NCBI GenBank assembly: GCA_965153285.1
Contig: OZ229115.1
DNA: 64,000 bases
Source: Podarcis tiliguerta
Lineage: Eukaryota
Reading direction: 5' to 3' (one strand)
Positions 4,426 to 64,000 of the stretch are shown piece by piece (position 1 is the stretch's first letter; every line of letters starts with the position of its first letter). Position numbers and translations under genes: made by a program. Below the pieces are notes generated by a model, which did no database searches, was not told the origin of the DNA, and worked only from the letters and a program-made list of their open reading frames with translations.

Positions 4426-5886
4426 CCAAGAACTAGAACAAGCTTAAGGACTACTGGACTTTACTGAGGTTCAAGGAAGTGGATACTACTTAATGTGTTG
4501 TATTCAGTGCTAGTCCTACTTAGATTTGACCTACCGCCATTAAGGAGCCTGTTAGTCTTGTCCAGTGACTTCAATGGGTCTACTCCTGAGTAGGATTAAC
4601 ACTGGATACAACTCTATTATTTTTAAAATTACCTGGGCAGAGAACTTGGAAATTTCCCCTCTACCACAAACATGAGTCAACTCTTACAGGCTCTGAGCCA
4701 GAAGACTCCTCTTCATGAGTAATTTGGAACACTCAAACAGCTCTCAGTGCAAACAAACATCTGAAACTGGGGTGGTGATTTGAAGCAGCTGAATGGCCCT
4801 TGGGAAAAGGCTTAGGCACCCCTCCCACGATCTACCGTTCTCAAGTCCCCATCCCAATCCATCCCAAAGCACTATCTTATTACTTTAAATTGAATTTGTG
4901 GTAGTGTTGCATGCATTTGTGCTTAACTTCTAATTAGTCGTAGGGCTGTGCCAAATGTCTGTTCCAAAGCATAGTGCTTTCAGTGGACCTGTAAATGCAC
5001 TTTTAAAATAATAATAATAATAAAGCTTTTCACAACATTGCTAGAAAATAGCACAAAGGAAGCAGCCAAACCCACTAGCTGTGTATGTTTCTCCAGTGCT
5101 GCCCCCCCCCAAGCCCATAAGCTATAAAAAGGCCCAGCAGTGCAGTGCGCCTTTGTGAGGCGACAGCAGTCTGTGGAATCTGCTTTTCCCTGAGCCTGAG
5201 GATGGCTCTCCAACTCACGGAGAGCAGGCCATGTTTCTTGGTTGCCATGAGCGAATACTGCTTCCACCAACACACATTCTGGTGGGGTGCCAAAACAGCA
5301 GCTTTTGCCCATGAATATGTAAGACAGTCGACATTTTGGTAGCCATAGCAGGCCGCAAAAAACTGAAAAGAAACATAACAACCTGAGCAGTGAAGTGAAT
5401 CGCACCTGAGAGGCACCTGCCTTCATCTTACAGGAGGCAGCACTATAGCATGCTTCTACAGATCTGCTAGTACTCATGAAAGCCTTCCTCTATTTTTCCT
5501 ATTCACATGGGCGCACACACAGAGCTTTCAATTCCTTGTGTGGCCAGATACTACCAGCCTGTAAAGTAGGAATGGAAACCTGTAGTCTAGCAACATCTGG
5601 AGAGCTACAAGATCCATCATGCTGACTATTAGCCCTGCTGGCTGGGGCTGATGGGAGTTGGAGTCCCAGTAACATCTGGGGGCTGCAGATTCCCGATTCC
5701 CCACAGCCGTTAAGAGGCTTCTGCACTAATTTGTTAATAGAAAATGAGCTTATCTATGAACATGGCACATTAGCATGTTCTCCTTAATCAGGTCTAGCTG
5801 GAATATTGAGGAAACTCTTGCCGAAACAGTAAATAAGAGGCTGGCTCTTCTCTCCCCAAGACACCTTCCTGCCCAAAGATCCTCAC

Positions 5887-6604
5887 CTGAATTTGCTGCC
5901 CCATGGAACAGGAGGGGCGCAACTCTCGGCCGGGCCCGCTGCGCATGCGAAAGGCCCCTTGTCTGTCCAGGGAATGTGGCCGCGCATTACGCAGCCGAGT
6001 CCGTTCGTGCCATGATTTTAGCTCTTCTGTCACGGCTGACTTGGAGAGGACTCGGGGCCCCATCGGGGAGCAGTCCTTCAGAGATGGGGTGCGCACCACC
6101 CTGCTGTGAGAAACAACCGACCGGTGGAACCGCACAGGCACCGCCTCTTCCTTGTAGGCAAAATGGGTGGAGCTTACAGACAGGAAGGGCGGCCGGCTGT
6201 GGCCGAGCTCACGCCCAGCCGGCAGGTGGTTGTCATATTCTACGGCAGAGAAGTAGCCCAGCGGTGAGAGCAGCTTCTGAGGACACTGGCAGTGGTATTC
6301 GGGTCCATTCCCCTTGGAGGTCTGGTTCTGAAACGGCTGCAGGGGCTCCTCCACGGGGACCGAGGAGCTTGGCTTCAGGAAGGAGATGTCGGGGCTGCTG
6401 CTACCGGCAGAGGTGGTATAGGAGATGCTGGAGACATCCGAATTGCTGTCTTCTGAGGCGGAGTGGTAGGTGGGCTTGGCGGCTGGGTTGGCCTTGGGCA
6501 CAGAGAAGCAGTACTCGGGGACGGTGACAGTGTAGTAGGTGGGACGCCGCCTTGGCAATGCGCTTCTTCCACGGGACTCGAAGCCTTCCCGGGATGAACA
6601 CACC
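5887..6604 (-). CDS. INAVA: INAVA coding exon 8 (718 nt)
   Basis: Acceptor CTCCAG|G, donor CAG|GTGAGG. Encodes RGRSALPRRRPTYYTVTVP, SEDSNSDVSSIS, RTPSLKD and LSKSAVTEELKSWHERTRLRNARPHSLDRQGAFR, all INAVA-conserved blocks. Confidence 0.95.
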
Positions 6605-10596: not shown

Positions 10597-11296
10597 GTGG
10601 ATCTATAGGTCGGGGGGGGGGGTAGAGTGAGTGTTACAATGCCATCCCCTGCATGCTTATTTCCCACTGCACCCTATGCAGCAAACTTCCCCCAAGTCCC
10701 TATAAAACCAAGAGATTTGGATCCAGAGCTATCTAACTTTCTACGCCTTCCTAAGGGTTAATCTGGCACTTCAGGTCTTTGCGTCATTCGCTGCAGGTTT
10801 CTACATGCTTCCTCCTCCAGCTGGCTCTCCCTGTTCTTGATTGAGCTCACTTTGGCAACCGCTGACAGAAAACTGCAGTTTGCGTAGATTACATGGGCAG
10901 GAAGAAGCCATAAAAGGTCAGTTTCCTCCCTTGAACTGGGATGAATTCCAACTAAACCACGCCTGTCAGAAGCCTGTCTGACCTACTTCTGATTTCTAGG
11001 GACAGATATTTAATCCCAGACTCTGTCTTCATTTCCTGACAACTCAAGGTTTTTTGGTTGGGTTTTTTTTTTTAATTAATTAATAAACCCTCTTCCTTAT
11101 ACTTACTCATTTCAATTTATCACCATTCAATTTTGTCCTCCTGTGCAGTGGCCACAAAGAACAATTTTACTATACCTCCCTTTGTATATTTTTATGGTCA
11201 TTATCACCACACGCAAAGGACCCATTTCTCAGACCTGCCTCTCTAGGCCCTTGTGTTGATCTCAAGGCCACTGTAGGATGCTGAGCTCCTGCTCAC

Positions 11297-11525
11297 CTTG
11301 TAAGGCTGGCGCACTGGCCCTCAGCTGTGACGAATGCCTGGCTGCCTGGCGGCACTCTGTGACAGACTGCTCCAGATCCTTCAGCTTCTTTTCCTCCTTC
11401 AGCACAGCACTTTTGCGGCGCTTCCGAACCTGCTTGGTGAGATTCTCTTCCCGGGACAGACATCGCGCTGCTTCAGCAATTTGCAGCTGCAGAGCTAGGT
11501 CTCTCTCCAACATGCTCAGAGGATC
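11297..11525 (-). CDS. INAVA: INAVA coding exon 4 (229 nt), CUPID coiled coil
   Basis: Acceptor CCGCAG|GAT, donor AAG|GTGAGC. Encodes DPLSMLERDLALQLQIAEAARCLSREENLTKQVRKRRK. Confidence 0.95.
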
Positions 11526-11656
11526 CTGCGGAGGAGAACAGACACGGATTCCAAACGATGAAACTCTCTGGAAAGGATGGAGCGACCCAGCGTTTCAAAA
11601 GGGGGCACACGAGGACTAAAGTGGCAGAATCCAAAATCACAGCAATGGAGAAGCCT

Positions 11657-11970
11657 GGGGAAAGGCTGTACAGCTCAGTGGAAGAGCTTGCAAGAGATCC
11701 TAGGTTCAATTTCCAGCATCTTCAGCTAGGGCTGGGAAAGTCTGCTGCCTGCCAGTTTGTAATAGACCAGGGTTTCCCAAACATGGGTCTCTAGCTGTTT
11801 TTGGACTACAACTCCCATCATCCCTAGCTAGCAGGCACCAGTGGTCAGGGATAATGGGAACTGTAGTCCAAAAACAGCTAGAGACCCAATTTTGAGAAAC
11901 ACGGGTGTAGACAATACTGAACTAGATGGACCAATGGTCCGATTGGGCATTAGGCAGCTTCTTGTATTTC
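11657..11970 (+). mobile_element. tRNA-derived SINE interrupted by a hairpin MITE (11768-11903)
   Basis: A/B boxes (AGCTCAGTGG, GGTTCAATTTCC). The SINE body resumes at GTGTAGACAATACTGAACTAGATGGACC after a near-perfect palindromic insert. Confidence 0.7.
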
Positions 11971-13387
11971 TAGGGCACTCTTGGCAGCTGGATGCTTCCA
12001 AGACATTACTACCATTACCCCATCCCCTGCTTCAACTCATAAATCATAGGCTCCTTCCTTACGTCCTTTGGTAGATCAAATCAGATACTGAGTATGACTT
12101 TCATGCATCTCCCAGTTACATTCCATGTGCGTTCTAGAGTGGTCGGATGAAAAGATAGCAGGGTTCTTGCATTTTTAATAGCTGCATAGAAGTGGGAAGC
12201 TCAGTAAATGTAGCTTGCATGACACCAGCTGCAATTCAACTATTAAAAGCACACGAGCCCAAATGTCTTCTTTTGCATCTGAGCGCCCCAGTGCATTCAA
12301 CTAGTGTAGAAAGGCATCACAGGCTGAGCTAAATCTTCCTGTCTCACTCACAGTCAGGATAATTAAATAACAATAGACGGGTGATTTCCCACTCCTTCAA
12401 TGCCTGCTTATGAGCAGAATGGAGATTCTAATCCAGTTTAGGGATTTGTGAATCCTGAGCCAGGGATGGTAATTATTCAGGATTTAAGAAATCCGCAGGG
12501 GTGTGTTCTTCTGTATGAGCCATAGGACTGATGTCCTGGGCCCAGTTCCCAGCTGTCTGCCCTGCCCAGGTTTCTGAAGGAGGAAAACTATCCACAGACT
12601 AAGTGGAAATGTTCTATGTTTCTGGGGCAAGAGCTTCCTAATGGCTGGGGAAAGTGAGCAAAAAGGCAGGTCGGTAGGCGACATTCGGCAAGGTGAAGGT
12701 GAAATGAAAAGCTTTCCAAAGTTACGCTAAGTGTGTGTGAGAGAGAAAGAAGCTATGGTAAGCAAGAACACTTGTACAAAACACACACAATTCCACTTGG
12801 AGCCCACACCCTGTGCCACCCACTATGGGCACACAGCAAAAAAATAATAAGCAGCACCACACCTAGGCCGCCTCCTACTAAGATTATTATTAAAACAGAC
12901 GACAGGGGAGAGAAAGAGAGAGTGAGACTGCATAGCTGAAGAGTCAACAGATCCCACACCTTTGATGGAAATGAGGCCTAACTCCCTCTGTGTGTTTGGA
13001 GCCTGAAGCGTCTCTGTCCCTTTGGGAGTTTCTAACAGGATGCTGAACCCGAACAACCTCATCATTCCCAAAAGTCCTCTTTTAGCTGACAGCTGCTTCC
13101 TGGCACTGTATCGTCTTCAGTGGGAGTTCACAGCATAATCCTAATGCAAGCCATCCCTTCTCAACAAAGAATCGTGGTTGGTTTTTTCCTGGATTAGTTT
13201 AACTTGGTTTCAAAAATGGTGAAAACAAACAAACAAACAAAATCCCCCACTTCTATAAAGGCTGCCTGCCTGTTAAGAACTGCAGGATTATGTAGACAAT
13301 TGGTGAAAGGGATTACAGATGTACATGCCCTCACCAGGGGGAAATTCACTTTTCACCCTCTTGCACTTGATACAGAAAACTCTTTTA

Positions 13388-13661
13388 CAGTGGTGCCTCG
13401 CAAGACGAAATTAATTCGTTCTGTGAGTTTTTTCGTCTTGTGAATTTTTCGTCTTGAGAAGCACGGTTTCCCATAGGAAATGCATTGACGGTTTCCTATA
13501 GGAATGCATTGACGGTTTTAAGAAAAAGGCGCAAGACCTTTTCGTCTTGCGAAGCAAGCCCATAGGGAAATTCGTCTTGCGAAGCAACTCAAAAAACAAA
13601 AAACTCTTTCGTCTTGCGAGTTTTTCGTCTTGCGAGGCATTCGTCTTGCGAGGTACCACTG
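13388..13661. mobile_element. Tc1/mariner-type MITE
   Basis: TA|CAGTGGTGCCTCGCAAGACGAA...TTCGTCTTGCGAGGTACCACTG|TA, with internal TTCGTCTTGCGA repeats. Confidence 0.85.
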
Positions 13662-14030
13662 TACTGTGCAAATTGAAATTGTGTGGCTTTTTGTTATCTC
13701 TGGCTGTAAAGGCTCTCAGAAGAAACCAGTTTGATTCTCAGTGAGGTGGTTTGCTGGCAATTGCCAGTATAGAGGGGAAGTTGCTTTTGAATTACAGCTT
13801 CACCTGCCAGAAAAAAAATGGTCTGGTGACTCTAGTATCAGCAGCACAACATTTTTCTTCCCATCTCCTTCTGGACACTTCTGTGCTCGCAGCAAGGGTT
13901 GCCATGACAGCTGATAGTGACTCCCACCACAAGCAGATTTCCAAGCAGCGCCCTGGATAATTGGAAATGTTGTTTCTGCCCATATTCCCTAAACTCAGGA
14001 GGAGAAGCACCTCAGCAATATTCTCCTTAC

Positions 14031-14153
14031 CACTCCTCTGGAGAGAAAGGCCTTCTCATCCAATCTGAAAGCAGCACCAATTCGACGTCGGACCTTTGGG
14101 GCCACTTCTCCTGGTTTCAGAGGATACTCTGAAGGAAGCAATCCTGTCAGTTC
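14031..14153 (-). CDS. INAVA: INAVA coding exon 3 (123 nt): [41 protein letters not shown]
   Basis: Acceptor TTGACAG|GAA, donor GTG|GTAAGG. Carries the CUPID (DUF3338) signature ELTGxLPxEYPLxPGExxPxVRRRIG. Confidence 0.95.
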
Positions 14154-15512
14154 CTGTCAAGAAAACAGCAAAGGGAAGGTTCAGTTCCTAGAACTGTGTA
14201 TTTTCAGTCACACCCTGGGTCTTCAGAGCATCTTACAAAATACCTGTCTATCAATCTCCCTCTCTAAATAGGATCTCATGCCATTATTTTGTTAGCTTGG
14301 CAGCTTCTTCTTATTTCCTCAGTGTCCCATGACATCAAGTTAACCTCAGGCACAGAAGACAGCCATAGATAGATGCCACACAAAATAACCAGGCCTGAGT
14401 TCATTCCAAACCAAAGCTGCTTTTTTTTAAGTGCAGCCAGATCCAAAATGGACAGTTACTGGATGGGGGGAAATGGGCGGTTCAAAAATTCAAATCATGC
14501 AAAAGTTATAATATGTTAGGTGATGAAAAAAGTGACTGATAAAAATGTGAAAAGTAATTTAAGTCCAGACTCCCGCAGACCAGGCCCTGTTCAACCATAC
14601 CAATTTCTCTTCCCTTTGCCAAAGACATGCCCCACACTCCACTGCTAGCTGGGAGTTCAAGATGCCTCTTGGGTGAAGTTTGTCTATAACACTCTTCTGC
14701 ATTAGTGGGCCAGATTCCCAGTTCTGGGGATTTTCTCCCACCCTTTGTAGGCTTCCAAATGTCATGAAATGTGTCTCTAAGCAAGAAAGTATGTATGTGC
14801 ACGCACACACACACACACACACAGAGAGAAGTAATAGAAAGTTCCGGAAAACATTCCCTAAAACATTCAAGAGAGCAAGGTACAGTTCTGGTGTCCTGCA
14901 AAACCAACCAACCAAACAAAACCCCATTTGTTTTGTACTCTTTTAACTGAGGGTAATAGCAATAGGCTAGAAAGGGTAGTTTATTGTTTTAATTATTTTC
15001 TCCTTGACGCATTAAAATACCACAACTAATAGTGGTTGGTTTGATGGGTTGGTTTTGATCCAGGGGGCCCAGAAAATTTTCTCTGGGAGAAACTTCCACG
15101 TTCAATTTTTAACTATTTGCGGTATCTCAGGTCAGGAGGGAAAAGTTACCTCATCAGATTCACTTGCAGCATATGGCTAGGCTCGCTTAATTAAGCTTGT
15201 TAATTATGGGTTGCTTTAGAAGTTAACGTCTTGAATAATGCAGGAGCAACTCTCCAATGGGGAAAGTGTTCTTGATACAGTCTTTGCCCTTTCTTCGCCC
15301 CCAGATATTTTCTCCTAGTACTACCTTTGGGTTACATTGCCCCTCCCTCATGTCCGAATGTCTTTGATCTCTGAGGAAAGCTTCTCCAGTTTCTGTGAGC
15401 GTCCGAGTCCAAAGAACTACAGCCCTTAAAGATGGACCCTCTTTACTTTAGCAGGACGCCTCCTGCAGCCCAAACGGTGTGTGGCAACCCTGCAGACTTC
15501 CTGGCCCCTTAC

Positions 15513-15637
15513 CGCTTCGCGCAAACACAGCCTGCGCAGCTCCTGCACACAGGCCTCTAGTCGCTCCTCCAGCGCCTTCTGCTGCTTCCTCATAGCTTGC
15601 GTCAGATCCTTCATTGGAGACATGGGGCTGTCTAGTC
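15513..15637 (-). CDS. INAVA: INAVA coding exon 2 (125 nt)
   Basis: Acceptor CTTCCAG|GA, donor GCG|GTAAGG. Encodes DSPMSPMKDLTQAMRKQQKALEERLEACVQELRRLCLREA. Confidence 0.95.
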
Positions 15638-17042
15638 CTGGAAGGGTTGAGACAGACACAGACTGATGACCTGTCAGGTGCTACGGGCGGGAAGGGAAGC
15701 AGCAATATTTAATGACCCATACAGAGATGCCCTTGGGCAACTTTCTGGAGCCAGCTGCAGGTCTTGCGAATGCATCTTAAAGACCGGTGTCATTAGCAGT
15801 TATCATAAAAATGGCATGGGACATCAAAGGAGAGGCTGTCCTGACAGCTCATCAGGTGGGGTATGGAATGTGGACAACAGCCAGGACTGATTAGCTCTTA
15901 CTTCCAAGCTGCAGGCACCTCAAGGTCATCGCAGATCAGATAAGGAGGAGACTCCATGGTGATAGTCCTGATCATTAAGTTTATTACAGAACTAAGCAAA
16001 CAGATTTGCTGCTCTGCTCACAGACCGGAACAAAAAGGAGTCTTTGATATTTGTAAGCCTTAAGACAGCAGTTCCAGAAGATTTTAGCTCATGCTGCTTC
16101 TTCCACAGATCAGAGGCACTCGGCCAGATTGTTGACTCCTCACAAGCCACTTAAAGGTCAGATCTAAACCCACACTAGCTCATTCATACAGGACAATAGG
16201 AGACCATTCCCTCATAAGTGTAGGGGTGGGTGCAGGGTTGTGTGAAACCATACAACACTTTCTGAGTGGTGATGGTAGAAGAAACGTCTCCAGTTTAGAA
16301 CTAACTTGCTAAACTGGGAGCAGTTTCTATTCAGATGTGCCCTGAGATATCAAATAAGCACATGGGGTTGCAAAAGGAATCAGACTAGGAAGTGGATGCT
16401 GAACTCTCCTATTATTTTGTTTGTCTGGATCCCCTGCTGCAACTCCTGCTTAGAGCTGCCATGCACTATAGATCCCAAAGTAGTGCTGTTCACTGGCATG
16501 AGCCCACCCTATGAAAAAAGATTACCATTCCTTGTCTGTACACACAGATAGTTCAAAACCATTAAGAGATGCATCATATGCCATAGCTTCCTACATGAGA
16601 GGGAATCTTGTTGTATATACAACATTGCATCTTAAGTGTGGCCTGATTATTTACTTCTACCACAAGTATGTTGTTCAGCACTTTTACGCTAATTGTTCAT
16701 GGAAGCAGTTTCTAAAGTTTATATATAACTAAGTACAATGATCAGGTATTACTCATGCAGAAAGTATGCCACATACCGGGCAGCCGAAGGATTTTAGTGA
16801 AATAGTCTCCTACGGAGTCATCAGTAGGGATTATGTCCACTTTGCAACACCCCGGATAGTATTCAACTAAGTTTTACTCAGAGTAATCCCAATGAAATCA
16901 ATAAGCATGACTAAGTTAGGTCCATTAATTTCAATGGGTCTACCCTGAGTAAGTTGAACACTACCCTCTGCCTGTATTTCAATGCTACTAATATTTTTTG
17001 AAAAGAAATCTTTTATGATGAGGAACCAGTTATATTACAAGA

Positions 17043-56030: not shown

Positions 56031-57152
56031 TTACAAACCTACCCCATTGCTCTCTGGGTCTCCTACCCGAGCTGATGTTGCTGGTGTGGGCTTCTTCCTG
56101 CTGGCAAATAGGAGGCTCGTGTCTGTGGATGAAAAGGACAGGGCTGAACTTTGCACATTTTCCCTTTTGCTGCAGAAAGCAGGGAAATGCTTCAGGGCCT
56201 GCTGTCGGAATTGCTGATCCATAAAGACATAGATGATAGGGTTAACACAGCTGTTTGCGAATGCCAGGCAAGCACTGATGGTCAGCCCCCACGTGAGAGC
56301 CATCATTGCTGAGCAGCGGAGATGGATGTCCTGGGCCATGGTGAAGACGAAGAATGCCTTTAACACGTTGAAGGGCAGCCAAGAACAGATGAATGCTCCA
56401 ACGATGGCAAAGATGATCTTGAGGGCATTGTTTCTCCTCTTGCCTAGGTGGACATGGCTCCGAAGCTTGGAGAAGATAGAGCAGTAGCAGAACAAGATTA
56501 CTCCCAAAGGCAGGAGGAAGGTCAAGATGAGCATGATCAAGCTGAAGGTGGGGGAGGGCTCGTCATGGCACAAATACTTGTCATCCACCGGGTTCAACTT
56601 TCTGTAGAATAGAGATGGCATCCCCAGCAGAAGGGAGAACACCCAGATGCAACCACAGCTCATAGCTATGCTCTTCTTGGTGCTGATGGTCCTGGAATCC
56701 CACTGCTTGGTCATCACGAGGAAGCGTTCCACACTCATGCCCATCAGGAACAAGATGCTAGAGCAACGGTTCACAGTGATGGCGTAGCTACTCAACTTGC
56801 ATAGCCCCTCGCCAAAGCACCAGTAACCGAGGGCTTTTGATACAGCCCAGAAAGGCAGGGTGCATACGAAGACCAGGTCAGCCACGGCCAGGTTGAGGAC
56901 AAAGGTGTCCACGAGCCTCTTCCGGCCTTCCTTTCGTGCCATCAACAGGATCACAAAGAGGTTCCCGAAGAAACCAATGAGGAAAGTAATGTAGTAGACG
57001 GTGGGGATAAAGATATAGGCAAATGGCAGTTCTTGCAGGTGGCAAGTGTCATAATTCACCAGGTCACCATAATTGTCTATAGCGGATGACTCATAATCTC
57101 CGCTCCAGGTTTCAGTCATCGATGATCCAGTCACCATCTGAGCAGGTTCCAT
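56031..57152 (-). CDS. GPR25: G protein-coupled receptor 25 (class A, 7TM), intronless CDS, 373 aa; alternative starts at 57137 or 57119
   Basis: GN (TM1), LAVADL, TLPFW, WCFGEGLCKLSS, MSVERF, CSWLPF, LAFANSCVNPIIY. KRLVDTFVLNLA corresponds to GPR25 RRLVDTFVLHLA; adjacent to INAVA as in human. Confidence 0.95.
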   Translation of the reverse strand: MEPAQMVTGSSMTETWSGDYESSAIDNYGDLVNYDTCHLQELPFAYIFIPTVYYITFLIGFFGNLFVILLMARKEGRKRLVDTFVLNLAVADLVFVCTLPFWAVSKALGYWCFGEGLCKLSSYAITVNRCSSILFLMGMSVERFLVMTKQWDSRTISTKKSIAMSCGCIWVFSLLLGMPSLFYRKLNPVDDKYLCHDEPSPTFSLIMLILTFLLPLGVILFCYCSIFSKLRSHVHLGKRRNNALKIIFAIVGAFICSWLPFNVLKAFFVFTMAQDIHLRCSAMMALTWGLTISACLAFANSCVNPIIYVFMDQQFRQQALKHFPAFCSKRENVQSSALSFSSTDTSLLFASRKKPTPATSARVGDPESNGVGL

Positions 57153-59052
57153 CTCTTGTCAAGGACCAACCAAAGAGTGTTAAGTTGCTGCTATTGCATA
57201 GGCTGGCCAAAGCACTATGATCTGTAACAGGCTGGGTGTCTTTCTTTTTTAAAAAAAAAAATGGAGAAGTTGTTTTCTTGTTGGTTTTAACGATCTGTGG
57301 TGACTTCCTTTTGTTTTCAAGAAGAGTTAAAGGGTGGGGCCAAGCTAGAAGGTATCAGATCAACCTAATTTTGGAAACCCAAGATTGCAGAAAGTGGGTA
57401 TTGGCATTCCTGGGTGTGGTCAGGGGCACATACGCAATCAGTGGTGTGGAGTGTGCCACGATGTGCAAACTCAATGACAACTTCTTTTCTCGTTGCAGAA
57501 TTTTGATTTTATTTTTTTAAGTGCGATGAATCACTGGCCATAAACATGCACAAAACTTTTAGATGGAGATGTTAGTATCTATAATGGATTTGAATATATA
57601 GTTTTATATATGTTTTTATTAAATAGCATTGTTTTCAGGATGCCTCATGTGAAGTGATTCTTAAACAAAATGATCATCATATACAAAATTGTTTGTCTTC
57701 ACACAGAGTATAATGTCAAGCTCTGCTCTTTGACACTACTGCTGTATTTGCAATAGGGTTTCCACCTGAGCTCTCAAATCTATTAAACTGCTAGTGTTAA
57801 ATTAGGTGCCAGGCAAAAACCCAAGCTTTTGGCTTATTAAACAACTGATGGCTTTTTAAAGTGTATGAGGGTGAATGTATTGCTTTTCTTTGTTACTGGG
57901 GTATGTGCTTTGTGTTTTTATATTGTCAACCGCCCTGTGATCTTCAGAGGACGGGCGGTATAGAAAGAAGAAGAAGAAGAAAACAAGTGTTGCCTGAAAT
58001 CACCAGAAGAAAATGCCCTTCTTAAACCTTATGTTTTCCCACAAATCCTTCATGTTTCCTCTCCTGCTTCCTGCTCATTATGTTAAAATAAGGCCCTGGA
58101 CATCTGTCCCCAAATCCTGCCTTGATGGCACCACTGGATGTGGGACACAGGTCTGAGGCTGACTGCCCATTGGGAAGATCAGGTTTCTTCCCATAGTACT
58201 ATGGGAGGATTGAAAGAGCATCTTTAACGAATGCAAACATTTCTGAGAGGCTGGTTTGTTTTCCTTTTAAGGTACTGGAGAGCCAACAACTCAAAAGCAT
58301 TTAAGTTCACCAGATTGCTTTTCTGTGGTGTTTGAATTTAGCGTCAACAAAACTAAAGCTATCAGCTTCAAGGAAGGGGCACTCCAGTTTCAGCTGCCAC
58401 GGCAAAACTGCAGGTACCCTATTAAAAGTGAATCCCAATGAATCTGCTTGTTAGTGTATTTTAATGCCCTAGGAAAGGAATAACCGAAGGCTGACTCTGC
58501 ACTGAGAAAAGAAGATTTACATATACTTCATATATGTATACTACATATCCAGACTGTTACATGGGTGTTTTTTAAAAAAATAATAAAATCACCAAACAGA
58601 ATATACTGGTACTTAAGATGAGGAAAGAAGCACTGGGCAAGGCAACATCGGCTGTTTGGCCCACATTCCTGCCCATTCAGATACCTAACCACTGAAGCCC
58701 ACCGCTCATTATGGTTCTGTGGGGCTAAGGTTGGCTAACACATCTGCTCTGCTTCAGGACAGGCACTTCCTTTGGTTATTTCCACAACTAAAGCTGGGAA
58801 ATCTCTCTTCTCCCCACCTGTGTGTGACCTCACTGTACATGATTTAAGTGCAATATAGGTGTTCACTGTGCCTCCTATACATGAGCATACCCTTTGCCCC
58901 ACCCCAGATATTAGATCCTTGGATAGATGTTTTTTTTCTGAGCTCATCTAGAAGTATGGTGGTCATTTACACATTGCCAAAGTGGATGAAATTTGTCACC
59001 CACACACCAAAAGGACAAAGATAGATTTGCATGTGCTAATTTGTATTCCCTT

Positions 59053-59160
59053 TTGAGAAGGACCTTAGCTTAGTGGTAGAGCAGCTGATTTGCATGCAGA
59101 AGGGCCAAGGTCCAATCCTTGACATCTCTCCAGGTAGGCCTGGTAAAGATTGCCCTCTTC
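59053..59160 (+). mobile_element. tRNA-derived SINE 5' part
   Basis: TAGCTTAGTGGTAGAGCAGCTGATTTGCATGCAGAAGG...CAATCC. Confidence 0.65.
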
Positions 59161-60303
59161 TCCCTGCTTTGTCTTCAAACTGGGCTTGGACTGGCCAGCC
59201 CACCCAACAGAGGATGCCTTCAAAGAGAGGAGTGTGAAAGGGCGCATGGGCAGCCTGTCTCGAAGAGAGATCTATATAAATGATGAATAATGAGAGCAAT
59301 AAGTGTAACGTATGCTGAAACCAACTGATGGCAGCGTCTCCAGATGAACAGGTCAAATAGCAGCATGAACTGTAACTCACCTCCTGCTAGCAATTTCGTT
59401 GTGGTTCTTACCAGTACTCCCGGATAAGATAAACAACCAGTCCTGCCTCCACACCTGCATTTTTGATTCTTTGCCCGGCTAAGCTTGCATTTTGAACTCT
59501 TTGCCAGGCTAAGGAAGCTTCCCAACCCTTTCCCACCATCTCAAACCATCCCAAGTTCATCCGCCTGTTATTTGTGCCTCTACTTGAGTATCTCACCACC
59601 CTTAATGCTTTTCTCCTGGATAGTGACCTGTGAGACACTTGAAATCGTTCCCTTAATTCTATAAGTAGGAAATTGAGGACAGCAGAAAACACTATCTGGC
59701 GTATATTATAGATCCATGATCCTAATACAGCTGCAAACATGTATCTCCCCACTAGACCATTCATGTTTCTCCATGCCAAAGTTAGCTTTAATGGTGGGTT
59801 ATATCTCAATCTAAGCATAGAAAATTTGACACTGGAGCTATCAGGTAAGAGTATTATCAACTTTTTTACAAAGAGAAAAGAGAGGCCTGGATCAGGTGAG
59901 AGCCTAGTAAGGCTTGGAATGCAAAAAAGAAAAGAAGAAGAGTGTTTTCTTTGTAATGATGCATTACTGAATAGCAAAACAAACAACAAACAACCCTCCC
60001 CCCCTAAAAAAACTAAAAAGGCAGCCATGCCAAGTCACCGCCTCCACTGCAGATTCCAATCTGCCCTTTCATCTCCATGTTTCCTTAACTGTCATGGCTG
60101 AATGACAACCAGCCTCCACCCAAAGCCACCACGAGGCTAGTCCTTGCTTCCGACTTTCTCCAGCTGCCCAGTGCCTGAGGTTAACCTGAGCAGGGGCTCT
60201 GCAGGCCAGCAAGGGGAGGCTGTGATGCATCTTAGGATTCCTCCGTGTGATCTTCCATCAAGGAGCCATTCGGATAGAAACTGCACTTGCGGTCACCTGG
60301 CTC

Positions 60304-60420
60304 TCATGTCTGCCTGATGTCCGTTTCTGTAGACAGCTTTATCTTCCTCAGGCTCTCTTTGACGAGGATGAACTCAGGCCGGCCATCTTGCTCGCCCTTC
60401 AAGACCAGCTCCCTTTCATA
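60304..60420 (-). CDS. FAM107-family gene, last coding exon: YERELVLKGEQDGRPEFILVKESLRKIKLSTETDIRQT*
   Basis: Acceptor CCTTTACAG|TAT, phase 0. PEFxxVKxxLR is the FAM107 (DUF1151) C-terminal motif. Not in the ORF track. Confidence 0.88.
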   Translation of the reverse strand, partial: YERELVLKGEQDGRPEFILVKESLRKIKLSTETDIRQT

Positions 60421-60669
60421 CTGTAAAGGAGGGGAAATGTTCAACATCTTTTCATTGGTTCTAGCCAGAGAGACAATTCTGCACAGACATGAGGCTGCAG
60501 CCTATTGCAAAACCAACGCCCCTATTGTTTGATTAAATGAAAGTCGTACACTCACACCTGAGCTTCATTGACACTGGATTTAGCAGCAGTTTTGATAGGA
60601 CTGAAAATGCTTGAGGGAGGCATTGCTCCCCATGGTTTACACACACACACACACACACAATATGACTTC

Positions 60670-60990
60670 CCTTCCACCCTTTTCCTGGTTCCTTTGCTTT
60701 TCTACTACTGCACTTAATCCACATCTTTTTAATCATCCAATTTGTTACCTATTAAATACTCTATTTCAACTCTGCTGGATTTACTCGAGACCTGCTAAGC
60801 TATGTTTTTGCTTATATTGGTTCTTAAAATATTCAGTAAACATTGTCCATTCCTCCTTGTATTCCTTATCTTCATTTTTTCTTATCCTGTTCTTCAGACC
60901 AGCCAGTTCAGCATATTCAAACGTTTTACACTTCCTTTCTTCCTCAGTGGGTACTATACTTGCTCTCCACCTTTGTGTCCCATTGTCACT
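60670..60990 (-). mobile_element. L1 LINE 3' fragment in a FAM107-like intron
   Basis: QRWR...VPTEEE..K..EYAELA.L...I......Y.EEW..F.EY.K, the same ORF2 end as 36292. Confidence 0.75.
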
Positions 60991-61490
60991 TCTGATTAAA
61001 ACTGATTTGGTATGTTTTTGAAACAGTAAAAACACAGCAATATCTGCTTACCAGAAGGGAAGAGGTGCTTGGAGGACAGGGTCTGCGTAATATCAAAACT
61101 GTGTGTGTGTTTGGGCCTGGAAGGAGAACTGGCTATCTTTACTTCTGAAGATGAACGATGGAGAAGGAACTGAGAGAGGAGATGCTGGTCACACCTGAGG
61201 GGAAGGCTGCCACAAGGGAGAAGGGTTCTATACAATGTAGATACTACATCCCCTAATAATCCTGGGAACTGTAGTTTAAGGGTGCTGGGAATTGTATCTC
61301 TGTGGGGGTAAAATGGATTCTTTGTGATTAGATGCTGTTTTTGCTAGGAAGACAAATAAGCCTTGATGAGCTGGGTGTGTGTTAGGGATTAATAATATGG
61401 ACTGATCACAGTAGGATGAAGGAGGTTATAAGACAAACTTGATGTTGTGATACATCCAGAAAAACTAAATGGGGAACGGATGGTAAAGAC

Positions 61491-61635
61491 CTGGTCAAGC
61501 TTCTGCTGTCGTTTTCTTAGCTCTTCTTCCAGATCTGTCAAGGGCTTTTGGGTTTCTTCCTGCTGCTTCAGCTGCTTGATTCTTCTGGCTTCTAGAACTC
61601 TCTGAAGCTCAGGCTTGTGTTCTGGAAGGATCCCC
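61491..61635 (-). CDS. FAM107-family gene, middle exon: (R)GILPEHKPELQRVLEARRIKQLKQQEETQKPLTDLEEELRKRQQKLDQ
   Basis: Acceptor TTCTGTAG|G, donor CAG|GTCTTT, phase 2-0. KPELQRVLE and DLExELxKRQQKL motifs. Confidence 0.9.
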
Positions 61636-62017
61636 CTACAGAAAGGACAACACAGCACAAAAGCAGAAGTTGATGAGCCTTTCTTCTCTTCCACAATGCC
61701 TGTCATTCTACACCCCCTCCTTCATCCCATTGACTTTCACCAGATTCCATGATAACCCAGGGTTCTCCTAACTTATCAGACCTATGAAGAACTAAATATG
61801 GGCTCTGTAAGAATTGGACTGTTATATTCCAAGCCCTCCTCCTCCAGTGCCTAGTCAAGTTGATTGGGAGTCCCAGTGTGGTTTCTCTCCTGTGTATTGG
61901 GCAAAAATCCCTTTCTTATTTGGCTTAGTGGATACCCCGAGTCGCCATACTAGATGCTAGATTTAAGTGCTTTTGAGAGATATCTCATGGACCCACACCC
62001 AATGGAGATTGTGCTAC

Positions 62018-62358
62018 TAAACCACAGAGCCTAGGGCTTGCCAATCGGAAGGCTGGCAGTTCGAATCCCCACGACGGGGTGAGCTCCCATTGTTCGGTCC
62101 CAGCTCCTGCCAACCTAGAAGTTCGAAAGCACATCAAAGTACAAGTAGATAAATAGGTACGGCTCTGGCGGGAAGGTAAATGGCGTTTCCGTGCGCTGCT
62201 CTGGTTCGCCAGAAGTGGCTTAGTCATGCTGGCCACATGAACTGGATGCTGTCTGCGGACAAACGCCGGCTCCCTCGGCCTATAGAGCAAGATGAGCGTG
62301 CAACCTCAGAGTCGTCCACAACTGGACCTAACGGTCCTTACCTTACCTTTACCTTTAC
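62018..62358 (+). mobile_element. Sauria SINE (5'-truncated) in a FAM107-like intron
   Basis: AAACCACAGAGCCTAGGG...GTAGATAAATAGGTAC...(ACCTT)n tail. Confidence 0.9.
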
Positions 62359-62693
62359 TTATAACTATGACAACTCTACCCATGAAAAAGAGGACACATC
62401 CTGGAAAAAGAGGACATATGGCAACCCTCTGGAATCTCCTAGGTTCTACACCACCCTGGTATGATTCAGAGCAGCCCATGCCCTCTGGCAGCCTTGGATT
62501 CTCACGCCAACGGTCATGTAAGATTGAGTTGATTCCCCGCCTTGTTCCCAATGCAGATCTTCACTCAACTTTTCTTCCCTGGCCAGGGAGGCACCATTTT
62601 GTGGTACACCTCAGGGGCCAATGCATGGTATGTTCTCTGTTCAAAGCTTTAGTGCCTAAACTACTGCAATTCCTGGATTAAAGACACTCTCAC

Positions 62694-62841
62694 CTCCTCT
62701 GAGTGAAAATCAGTTCCCGGTGTAACTCGCGATGGTGCTTGGACTCCCTCACTGGGTTTGGCAGTTTCTTAGGCTCAATGAGGCTCCTGTGGCTTTCAGA
62801 TGCCTGGTAGGTGCCATGCTCAAAGCTTCTGCTGTCTCCTT
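62694..62841 (-). CDS. FAM107-family gene, exon with LIEPKKLPNPVRESKHHRELHRELIFTQRR
   Basis: Acceptor GTTCCAG|AA (phase 1), donor GAG|GTGAGA (phase 2). Resembles FAM107A [30 protein letters not shown]. Confidence 0.88.
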
Positions 62842-63081
62842 CTGGAACATAATGGCATGACAACAGTTTTGAAGCCTTCAGAAAATTCATTACAAATTTT
62901 CCTCTCTGCTTTCATACTGTAAATTGGCTACAAAGCTGCTCAGCATCAATTCGTTGAAAGTATTTTTAACCTGCTCTTCTTTAAGGGTTCCAGAGTGGTG
63001 TAAAGTAGGACCTAATGTCAACAGCACTCTCCCCACAGAGAGTCATTCTCTCTTCCCCTCTGAATCCCTGGCCTCACCCAC

Positions 63082-63190
63082 TGAAGTTGGGGGAGTCTGA
63101 CCCCCAGGGTCCTAACACCCTGAAGCTGCTCCCTCTCTGGTCCGTGGGTGGGGCTAGCTTGGTCTTCCCGTTGCTGTATTCTTGAACCAT
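63082..63190 (-). CDS. Candidate start exon of the FAM107-like gene (MVQEYSNGKTKLAPPTDQRGSSFRVLGPWGSDSPNF)
   Basis: Acceptor TTTCCACAG| at 63219 and AGAATGG Kozak context. In frame with the next exon only via the CA|GTGGGT donor (63082); the stronger GG|GTGAGG donor (63078) is out of phase. Confidence 0.35.
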
Positions 63191-63279
63191 TCTTGTCCCC
63201 TAACTATTCCAGCAGTGAGCTGTGGAAAGATCTCTAAATGTTAATGAAATGGCTTGGATAGGCGTATCATAGTGTAGAT

Positions 63280-63534
63280 CAGGGGTCAGCAACCTTTTCC
63301 AGCCGTGGGCTGGTCCACCGTCCCTCAGACCATGTGGTGGGCCAGGCTATTATTTTGAAGGGGGGGTGGAATGAACGAATTTATATGCCCCACAAATAAC
63401 CCAGAGATGCATTTTAAATAAAAGGACACATTCTACTCATGTAAAAACATGCTGATTCCCGGACCATCTGCGGGCTGGATTGAGAAGGCGATTGGGCCGG
63501 ATCCAGCCTGCGGGCCTTAGTTTGCCTACCCATG
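63280..63534 (+). mobile_element. hAT-type MITE (third copy)
   Basis: TIRs CAGGGGTCAGCAA / TTTGCCTACCCATG; TSD GTGTAGAT/GTGTAAAT. Confidence 0.88.
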
Positions 63535-63969
63535 GTGTAAATCTTCCTCAATACCTGGGGCTTACTGAATGACTTGGTTGAGAACAAGGCAATTCATATG
63601 CAGTTGAAGTGCGGGCTTGAATGTTCTTCCATTTCTGAGATCCTTTAAGACAGGGTTGGCATTGTAATGCAAATGACACATCAGGTCAGTCACAGATGGT
63701 CCATCAAGACTTCTGTTATGTTAAGTCTTCCACACAGATTATTATTATACAAATGCACCCCCATGTGGCGAAACCACAAATTCCAACACTGAACATTTCA
63801 GTACCTGAAATCTATGGTTGCTACCTCTTTTTTCACCACTCCGGGGCACAATTATACCATTATTTAACCATGAAAACCTTGATAAACTGTTTATAATTCC
63901 ATTAAAAAATGATCATGTGAATGACATTTAAAAGAGGAAATTTTATGGAGGTTTTAAAAAGGGTTTCAC

Positions 63970-64000
63970 AATCATAGAATCATAGAATCATAGAATCATA
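63970..64000 (-). repeat. (ATCATAGA)n octamer tail of a CR1 or CR1-mobilised SINE running off the window
   Basis: The reverse complement (TTCTATGA)n is the canonical CR1 3' microsatellite. Confidence 0.75.

Follow-up and report, generated by a model that had tools for sequence, protein, structure and literature searches.

Evidence for a third FAM107 paralogue in the lizard Podarcis tiliguerta, shared with sharks, fishes and birds and not found in mammals

Introduction

According to a 2014 review, mammals have two FAM107 genes (PMC3990222), and work on the family covers these two: FAM107A, also called DRR1 or TU3A, which has been studied in stress, actin dynamics and cancer, and FAM107B, also called HITS. 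Reviews of the family count only those. In a stretch of 64,000 nucleotides from Podarcis tiliguerta (contig OZ229115.1 of assembly GCA_965153285.1), which we refer to in its whole length as the window, the minus strand carries three exons of a FAM107-type gene upstream of a rhodopsin-type receptor gene and a gene with a CUPID domain. The question that this locus raises is whether the gene is FAM107A, FAM107B or another member of the family. A sequence-only reading of the window had proposed an intact third paralogue, ancient, missing from mammals and located upstream of a GPR25-like receptor gene and a CUPID gene, and our results support this proposal. With a probability of about 0.85, we regard the gene as the orthologue, in the lizard, of an unnamed third member of the FAM107 family, which we call FAM107C, and the window as carrying the body of a functional protein-coding gene; no mammalian copy of the paralogue was found in the protein collections.

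Results and Discussion

Gene structure and splicing

The minus-strand sequence between 60304 and 62843 was read directly for splice sites, phases and frame. Three coding exons, A, B and C, are bounded by canonical splice sites (Table 1). Exon A is entered in phase 1 and left after two codon bases (phase 2), exon B is left in phase 0, and the frame is open across all three exons with compatible phases and no internal stop. Exon A encodes ...GDSRSFEHGTYQASESHRSLIEPKKLPNPVRESKHHRELHRELIFTQR, exon B encodes GILPEHKPELQRVLEARRIKQLKQQEETQKPLTDLEEELRKRQQKLDQ and exon C encodes YERELVLKGEQDGRPEFILVKESLRKIKLSTETDIRQT. This reading confirms the three-exon structure that had been proposed, and all of the FAM107/DUF1151 motifs that had been listed with it are present in exons A to C (LIEPKKLPNPV, HRELHREL, KPELQRVLE, ELRKRQQKL and PEFILVKESLR). 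The gene had been given the range 60304-63219; its three exons stand, and the part from 62842 to 63219 is not exon in the spliced contigs described below.

A run search gave 18 runs, probably RNA, in which 9-15% of the words sampled from the stretch occur; by our own estimate, transcripts with exons and 3' untranslated region (UTR) only might show about this share. Contigs were aligned from four runs, each from a different study, whose RNA nature was guessed. In all four, contigs leave out precisely 60421-61490 and 61635/6-62693, and on the strand of the gene these gaps have GT..AG ends. The two junctions that the sequence-only reading had named for checking, 62694/61635 and 61491/60420, were accordingly both recovered in 4/4 runs, as the joints 61634(5)/62693(4) and 60420/61491. 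The gene is spliced as predicted, and the spliced form is present in the contigs of four runs from four studies. The listed differences between contigs and window in the coding sequence (CDS), at 62723, 62729 and 61527, are all at third positions and synonymous when the codons are read.

The window holds the last three coding exons, and the first coding exon lies beyond 64000, because the additional 5' letters of the contigs match nothing in 62846-64000. The parts that three contigs add 5' of exon A, 2090, 36 and 54 letters long, are in each case outside this interval, and 62948-63215 has a depth of zero in all but one of the four runs. In orthologues the first coding exon reads MG-x-SQSKRGEYRTQKSSLNP and joins exon A in phase 1; the MG-x-SQSKRG start is conserved from skates to lizards (P0004, P0006, P0007, P0010, P0018, P0028, P0032 and P0036). 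The open reading frame (ORF) at 63074-63190 was considered as the first exon and was rejected, having neither a Pfam match nor contig support. Exon A can also be read back, unspliced, to an in-frame ATG (Table 1). This extension begins MNFLKASKLLSCHYVPE... and resembles the read-in N-termini of Anolis sagrei and Phrynosoma models; it would be a hypothetical alternative N-terminus, and the contigs of the four runs do not use it.

The 2090 letters 5' of exon A belong to a contig of 2807 letters and are far above the need of a 20-residue first exon; they could represent an extended 5' UTR, additional exons upstream or two transcripts merged in one contig. At the other end of the gene, contigs that carry the exon joints reach 60000-60007, at the end of the examined stretch (60000), which gives the 3' UTR its minimum extent. 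From 57620 to 60304 the minus strand contains no AATAAA, and no polyadenylation signal was found near the stop.

Family membership and current names

Exons were searched one by one, and full-length database orthologues stood in for the joined protein. Exon A matches the Pfam family DUF1151 (PF06625) with 39 bits (E 9e-10, profile positions 2-31) and exon B with 45.8 bits (E 7e-12, profile positions 34-81), so that each exceeds singly the gathering cutoff of 25 bits; exon C alone gave no Pfam match, being too short to score. The full-length model of Zootoca matches DUF1151 with 107.7 bits over profile positions 2-109. Against this species (XP_060133459), 47/48 residues of exon A, 48/48 of exon B and 38/38 of exon C are identical (133/134 in total), and identity over the three exons is about 91% with Pogona and about 70% with a turtle. 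When exon B was used in a word search, 26 proteins were returned, all 26 with DUF1151, and the exon was matched at 100% (48/48) in Podarcis muralis and Zootoca vivipara and at 75-96% in other squamates and turtles.

The degree of conservation bears on whether the locus could be a transcribed relic without protein function. We regard this as barely conceivable, considering that the frame is intact, that lizard and turtle retain about 70% protein identity, that the differences listed for the CDS among related lizards are synonymous without exception, and that the clade described below has been retained from chimaera to squamates.

The gene has already been modelled, under several names. RefSeq calls it "FAM107B-like" in birds, reptiles, salamanders and sharks, UniProt and Ensembl call the Podarcis, Anolis and tortoise models "FAM107A" (Family with sequence similarity 107 member A), and in zebrafish and other fishes the same gene appears as zgc:195245 and si:ch211-160o17.6. 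The fish entries and the RefSeq "protein FAM107B-like" entries are orthologues or co-orthologues of the window gene with automatic names only. Since the gene is FAM107A in one database and B-like in another, its orthology has been misassigned, and neither of the current names points to the right orthologues. In the literature, no paper naming or studying the gene was found under FAM107C, zgc:195245, FAM107B-like or FAM107 ohnolog. The gene is unnamed and unstudied rather than unseen, with models in RefSeq, Ensembl and ZFIN.

Position in the FAM107 tree

A full HMMER search with the Pogona orthologue gave 318 representatives, which fell into three large groups in a quick tree. A careful likelihood tree was built from 89 rows and 134 columns and rooted on two proteins that combine SH3 and DUF1151 (Lingula and one unnamed); the Zootoca model, with a 7-residue read-in, and other orthologues represented the window gene. 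In this tree the third clade, FAM107C, has a support of 97/96 and holds Zootoca among the squamates. Its branching mirrors the species tree, with cartilaginous fishes first, then the coelacanth and ray-finned fishes, and then salamanders and sauropsids. FAM107A and a fast-evolving fourth group, FAM107D, are united with a support of 96/82, and FAM107A proper, which includes chimaera and sharks, has a support of 92/84. The third gene, represented by its orthologues, thus stands apart from A, B and D.

Two readings that would make the gene a member of a known lineage can be set against this tree. On the one hand, the RefSeq name "FAM107B-like" and some B-like motifs (DLE-EL-KRQQKL) could point to a recent reptile-specific duplicate of FAM107B. 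We find this very improbable: the clade holds sharks, ray-finned fishes, the coelacanth and salamanders, and a grouping of sauropsid C with sauropsid B is rejected by the approximately unbiased (AU) test (p 6.7e-5). On the other hand, the UniProt names and the A-like motifs (KPELQRVLE and PKKL) could suggest that a lizard FAM107A has been relocated. This is improbable to the same degree, because a grouping of sauropsid C with sauropsid A is likewise rejected (AU test, p 4.2e-5) and because Podarcis muralis has a separate, true FAM107A (P0286 and P0313), which groups with tetrapod A, in addition to C (P0002 and P0003). The AU rejections therefore exclude both recent duplication and relocation. 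With the tree, the AU tests, the true FAM107A of Podarcis muralis and the intact frame taken together, we reject a recent FAM107B duplicate, a relocated FAM107A and a pseudogene. Nesting of the gene inside the A or B clade, which the sequence-only reading had named as the outcome that would count against it, was seen neither in the tree nor in the AU tests, and its proposal of a separate third lineage is borne out by a clade that includes chimaera, sharks and skates.

With platypus FAM107A as a query, true FAM107A was found in Podarcis muralis, Salvator, Rhineura, Lerista, geckos, snakes, tuatara, turtles, birds and Ambystoma, and also in Latimeria, Acipenser, Amia and Callorhinchus. Both A and C occur together in Podarcis muralis, Salvator, Rhineura, Lerista, Latimeria, Ambystoma, Callorhinchus, Acipenser and Amia. 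In Anolis carolinensis, C (P0027) is accompanied by a true FAM107B (P0054). Separate A and B loci in the lizard had been expected; in lizards the first is now seen in Podarcis muralis and the second in Anolis. The C clade and the A clade both contain Callorhinchus and sharks, and no named cartilaginous-fish sequence of FAM107B was available. Judged from these sequences, the split of FAM107C is older than the jawed-vertebrate radiation and precedes the separation of cartilaginous and bony vertebrates.

The fourth group had not been foreseen by the sequence-only reading. The group's own support is 98/95 and it is sister to A. Many of its members (P0134, P0142-P0144, P0150, P0151, P0156, P0158, P0163 and P0164) start with MQQELWL-AK-QVL, and DUF1151 was checked in three named members (P0142, P0144 and P0151). 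The group is present in the gecko Sphaerodactylus (LOC125429493), in the frog Engystomops, which also has a true FAM107A, and in the tarpon Megalops. Of the two root proteins, that of the brachiopod Lingula anatina (P0135) and the unnamed one (P0168), each has an N-terminal SH3 domain fused to DUF1151, and the vertebrate members are listed without SH3.

Distribution among vertebrates

A search with a profile of the clade gave 1073 matches, and membership was read from the best 120 of these together with named representatives. On this basis, the clade includes squamates, turtles, Alligator and many birds among the sauropsids; Lissotriton, Pleurodeles and Ambystoma among the salamanders; Latimeria, sturgeon, paddlefish, gar, bowfin and teleosts; and Callorhinchus, sharks and skates among the cartilaginous fishes. 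Teleosts carry two subgroups of C. The earlier suggestion that the copy was kept in squamates is too narrow, the gene being spread across jawed vertebrates, including turtles, alligator, birds, salamanders, coelacanth, fishes and sharks.

There were no mammals among the best 120 of the 1073 clade-profile matches, nor among the C-clade representatives that could be named; the unnamed ones lie within bird or teleost subclades. FAM107C may be completely absent from mammals. In the same best 120 matches there were no frogs, as against three salamanders. Frogs have A and the fourth group, and a second, independent loss of C may have occurred in anurans.

Neighbouring genes and the origin of the paralogue

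FAM107C is followed at 3.1 kb from its stop, on the same strand, by an intact receptor gene (Table 1). The best solved relative of the receptor is GPR15, with 205 bits vs 164 bits for CXCR4, and an Atlas look-up returned generic names of G-protein-coupled receptors only. GPR15 is the sister of GPR25. By its position, the receptor would be GPR25. A further 40 kb or so beyond it, again on the same strand, three consecutive exons encode a CUPID domain (PF11819), and FAM107C is upstream of both genes. A large open frame probably represents the final coding exon of this CUPID gene (INAVA); it gave no Pfam match and no informative Atlas match, and presumably it resembles the C-terminus of human INAVA.

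Table 1. Coordinates of the features on the analysed strand numbering of the window
Feature	Position	Strand	Details
Coding exon A	62694..62841	-	acceptor AG 62843-62842, donor GT 62693-62692
Coding exon B	61491..61635	-	acceptor AG 61637-61636, donor GT 61490-61489
Coding exon C and stop	60304..60420	-	acceptor AG 60422-60421, TGA 60306-60304
3' UTR, minimum extent	60000..60303	-	from joint-carrying contigs
Possible alternative unspliced 5' extension of exon A	62842..62890	-	ORF 62690..62890, in-frame ATG 62890
Single-exon rhodopsin-type receptor, GPR15/GPR25 kind	56031..57152	-	Pfam 7tm_1, E 1e-57; 373 aa, intact
CUPID-domain gene (INAVA-type), three consecutive exons	11265..15680	-	PF11819; coordinates are those of the containing open frames
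CUPID part 1	15429-15680	-	PF11819 positions 17-62, E 1e-12
CUPID part 2	13998-14156	-	PF11819 positions 63-100, E 1e-13
CUPID part 3	11265-11594	-	PF11819 positions 103-136, E 5e-7
Large open frame, probable last coding exon of the same CUPID gene	5794..6603	-	269 aa

The CUPID domain occurs in four human proteins, INAVA, FRMD4A, FRMD4B and CCDC120 (PMC6226287). Because the domain is shared by these four, the argument from paralogous regions is plausible. FAM107C most likely arose in the early vertebrate genome duplications. In human, FAM107B presumably lies beside FRMD4A, and FAM107A presumably lies on the same chromosome arm as FRMD4B. We know of no FAM107 gene in the human interval between CAMSAP2 and GPR25.

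The ancient paralogue could instead have come from a small-scale (tandem or segmental) duplication, in which case its place near a CUPID gene would be a coincidence. We consider this origin unlikely. It would agree with the tree, which shows no two-round pattern and leaves B unresolved near the root, and the linkages that would speak for genome duplication, FAM107B with FRMD4A and FAM107A with FRMD4B, are presumed ones. Against it, four vertebrate FAM107 groups (A to D) face four human CUPID proteins (PMC6226287), FAM107C lies upstream of the CUPID gene in the window on the same strand, and cartilaginous fishes in both the A and the C clades fit the timing expected of the genome duplications.

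Origin of FAM107C by genome duplication can be extended to a more specific scheme, which we put forward tentatively and hold to be rather doubtful. The jawed-vertebrate ancestor may have had four FAM107 genes, A, B, C and D, each paired head-to-tail with one CUPID gene (FRMD4B, FRMD4A, INAVA and CCDC120), in pairs that predated the duplications. If this were true, an actin-bundling FAM107 protein would be coupled, in function or in regulation, to a scaffold for cytohesin and ARF6, and mammals would have lost the FAM107 partner from two of the four pairs.

Comparison with FAM107A and FAM107B and proposed function

FAM107A and FAM107C are alike in having DUF1151, a similar size and the same helical layout, and they share the motifs PKKL-NPV, H-ELHREL, KPELQRVLE and PEF--V---LR. 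FAM107B has the same domain and the same exon layout as C, and the DLE-EL-KRQQKLxQ block of C is most like that of B. In all three, an intron follows Q-(K/R)-L-x-Q at the same place, which is exactly where read-through models diverge. The mixture of A-like (KPELQRVLE, PKKL) and B-like (DLE-EL-KRQQKL) motifs that had been described for the protein is indeed present, with both sets in its exons. FAM107C differs from FAM107A in forming a separate clade, A having its own chimaera and shark members, and in its signature, which comprises LIEPKKLPNPVRES, a YERE start of the last exon and, in tetrapods, a C-terminal -IRQT tail. It differs as well in distribution, since A is present in mammals and C was not found there in the protein collections. 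From FAM107B it differs in the N-terminus, the MAEPDYI-DDNPELI of B being absent from C.

DRR1 is small and largely helical, has a coiled coil in its centre, and acts on actin by bundling, capping and nucleating it (PMC6321462). By its predicted structure FAM107C would likewise be small and mostly helical with a central coiled coil: in the Pogona orthologue, as modelled by AlphaFold, helices span 55-68, 78-99, 104-131 and 134-144 and the N-terminus is disordered. The product would consist of conserved N- and C-terminal segments around this coiled coil. By homology with FAM107A/DRR1 it would bind and bundle F-actin, a proposal that we make because the third clade retains the conserved blocks with which the domain begins and ends. 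The odds are roughly even that FAM107C is an actin-binding and actin-bundling protein.

The main isoform is probably N-myristoylated and putatively membrane-anchored, because its MG-x-SQSK start, encoded outside the window, resembles Src-type signals; in this case, the protein would act at membranes. In frogs and fishes, the first exon of long FAM107A isoforms reads MG---GKK, comparable to the MG-SQSKRG of C, and because of this similar start the MG- first exon may be ancestral to the FAM107 family.

Assessment and significance

Several points weigh against our assignment of the gene and its product. In the tree, Zootoca and other orthologues stood for the window's own spliced protein. FAM107B forms an unresolved grade of short branches near the root. 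The absence from mammals refers to protein collections and to the best 120 matches, not to mammalian genomes. That the runs are RNA is a guess, and as contigs they attest the spliced form, not its strand, level or tissue of expression. The function is proposed by homology, and the confidence of the Pogona model is low overall (pLDDT 68, pTM 0.23).

As an evolutionary case, FAM107C is useful but ordinary: it is an ancient paralogue that mammals appear to lack, which is a common pattern. It means that most jawed vertebrates carry a third member of the FAM107 family, expressed and well conserved, and a fourth, divergent one. A proper name and orthology for the third would put right the transfer of annotation among genomes of fishes, birds and reptiles, would give workers on zebrafish and chicken a defined gene, and would allow the ancient pairing of FAM107 and CUPID genes to be tested.

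Repeats at the locus and their effect on gene models

Intron 2 contains a (CA)n microsatellite at 60632-60667. The UniProt model P0002 of Podarcis muralis has a false last exon that runs through this repeat (…CVCVCVCV…), the length of which differs from that in the window. High-copy interspersed repeats lie at 62010-62410, in intron 1, and at 63216-63617, upstream of exon A; over both, the summed contig depth in RNA-like runs is 1e4-2e5, as against 5-27 on the exons. The Podarcis model P0003 of Ensembl and UniProt reads part of the repeat at 63216-63617 as coding sequence.

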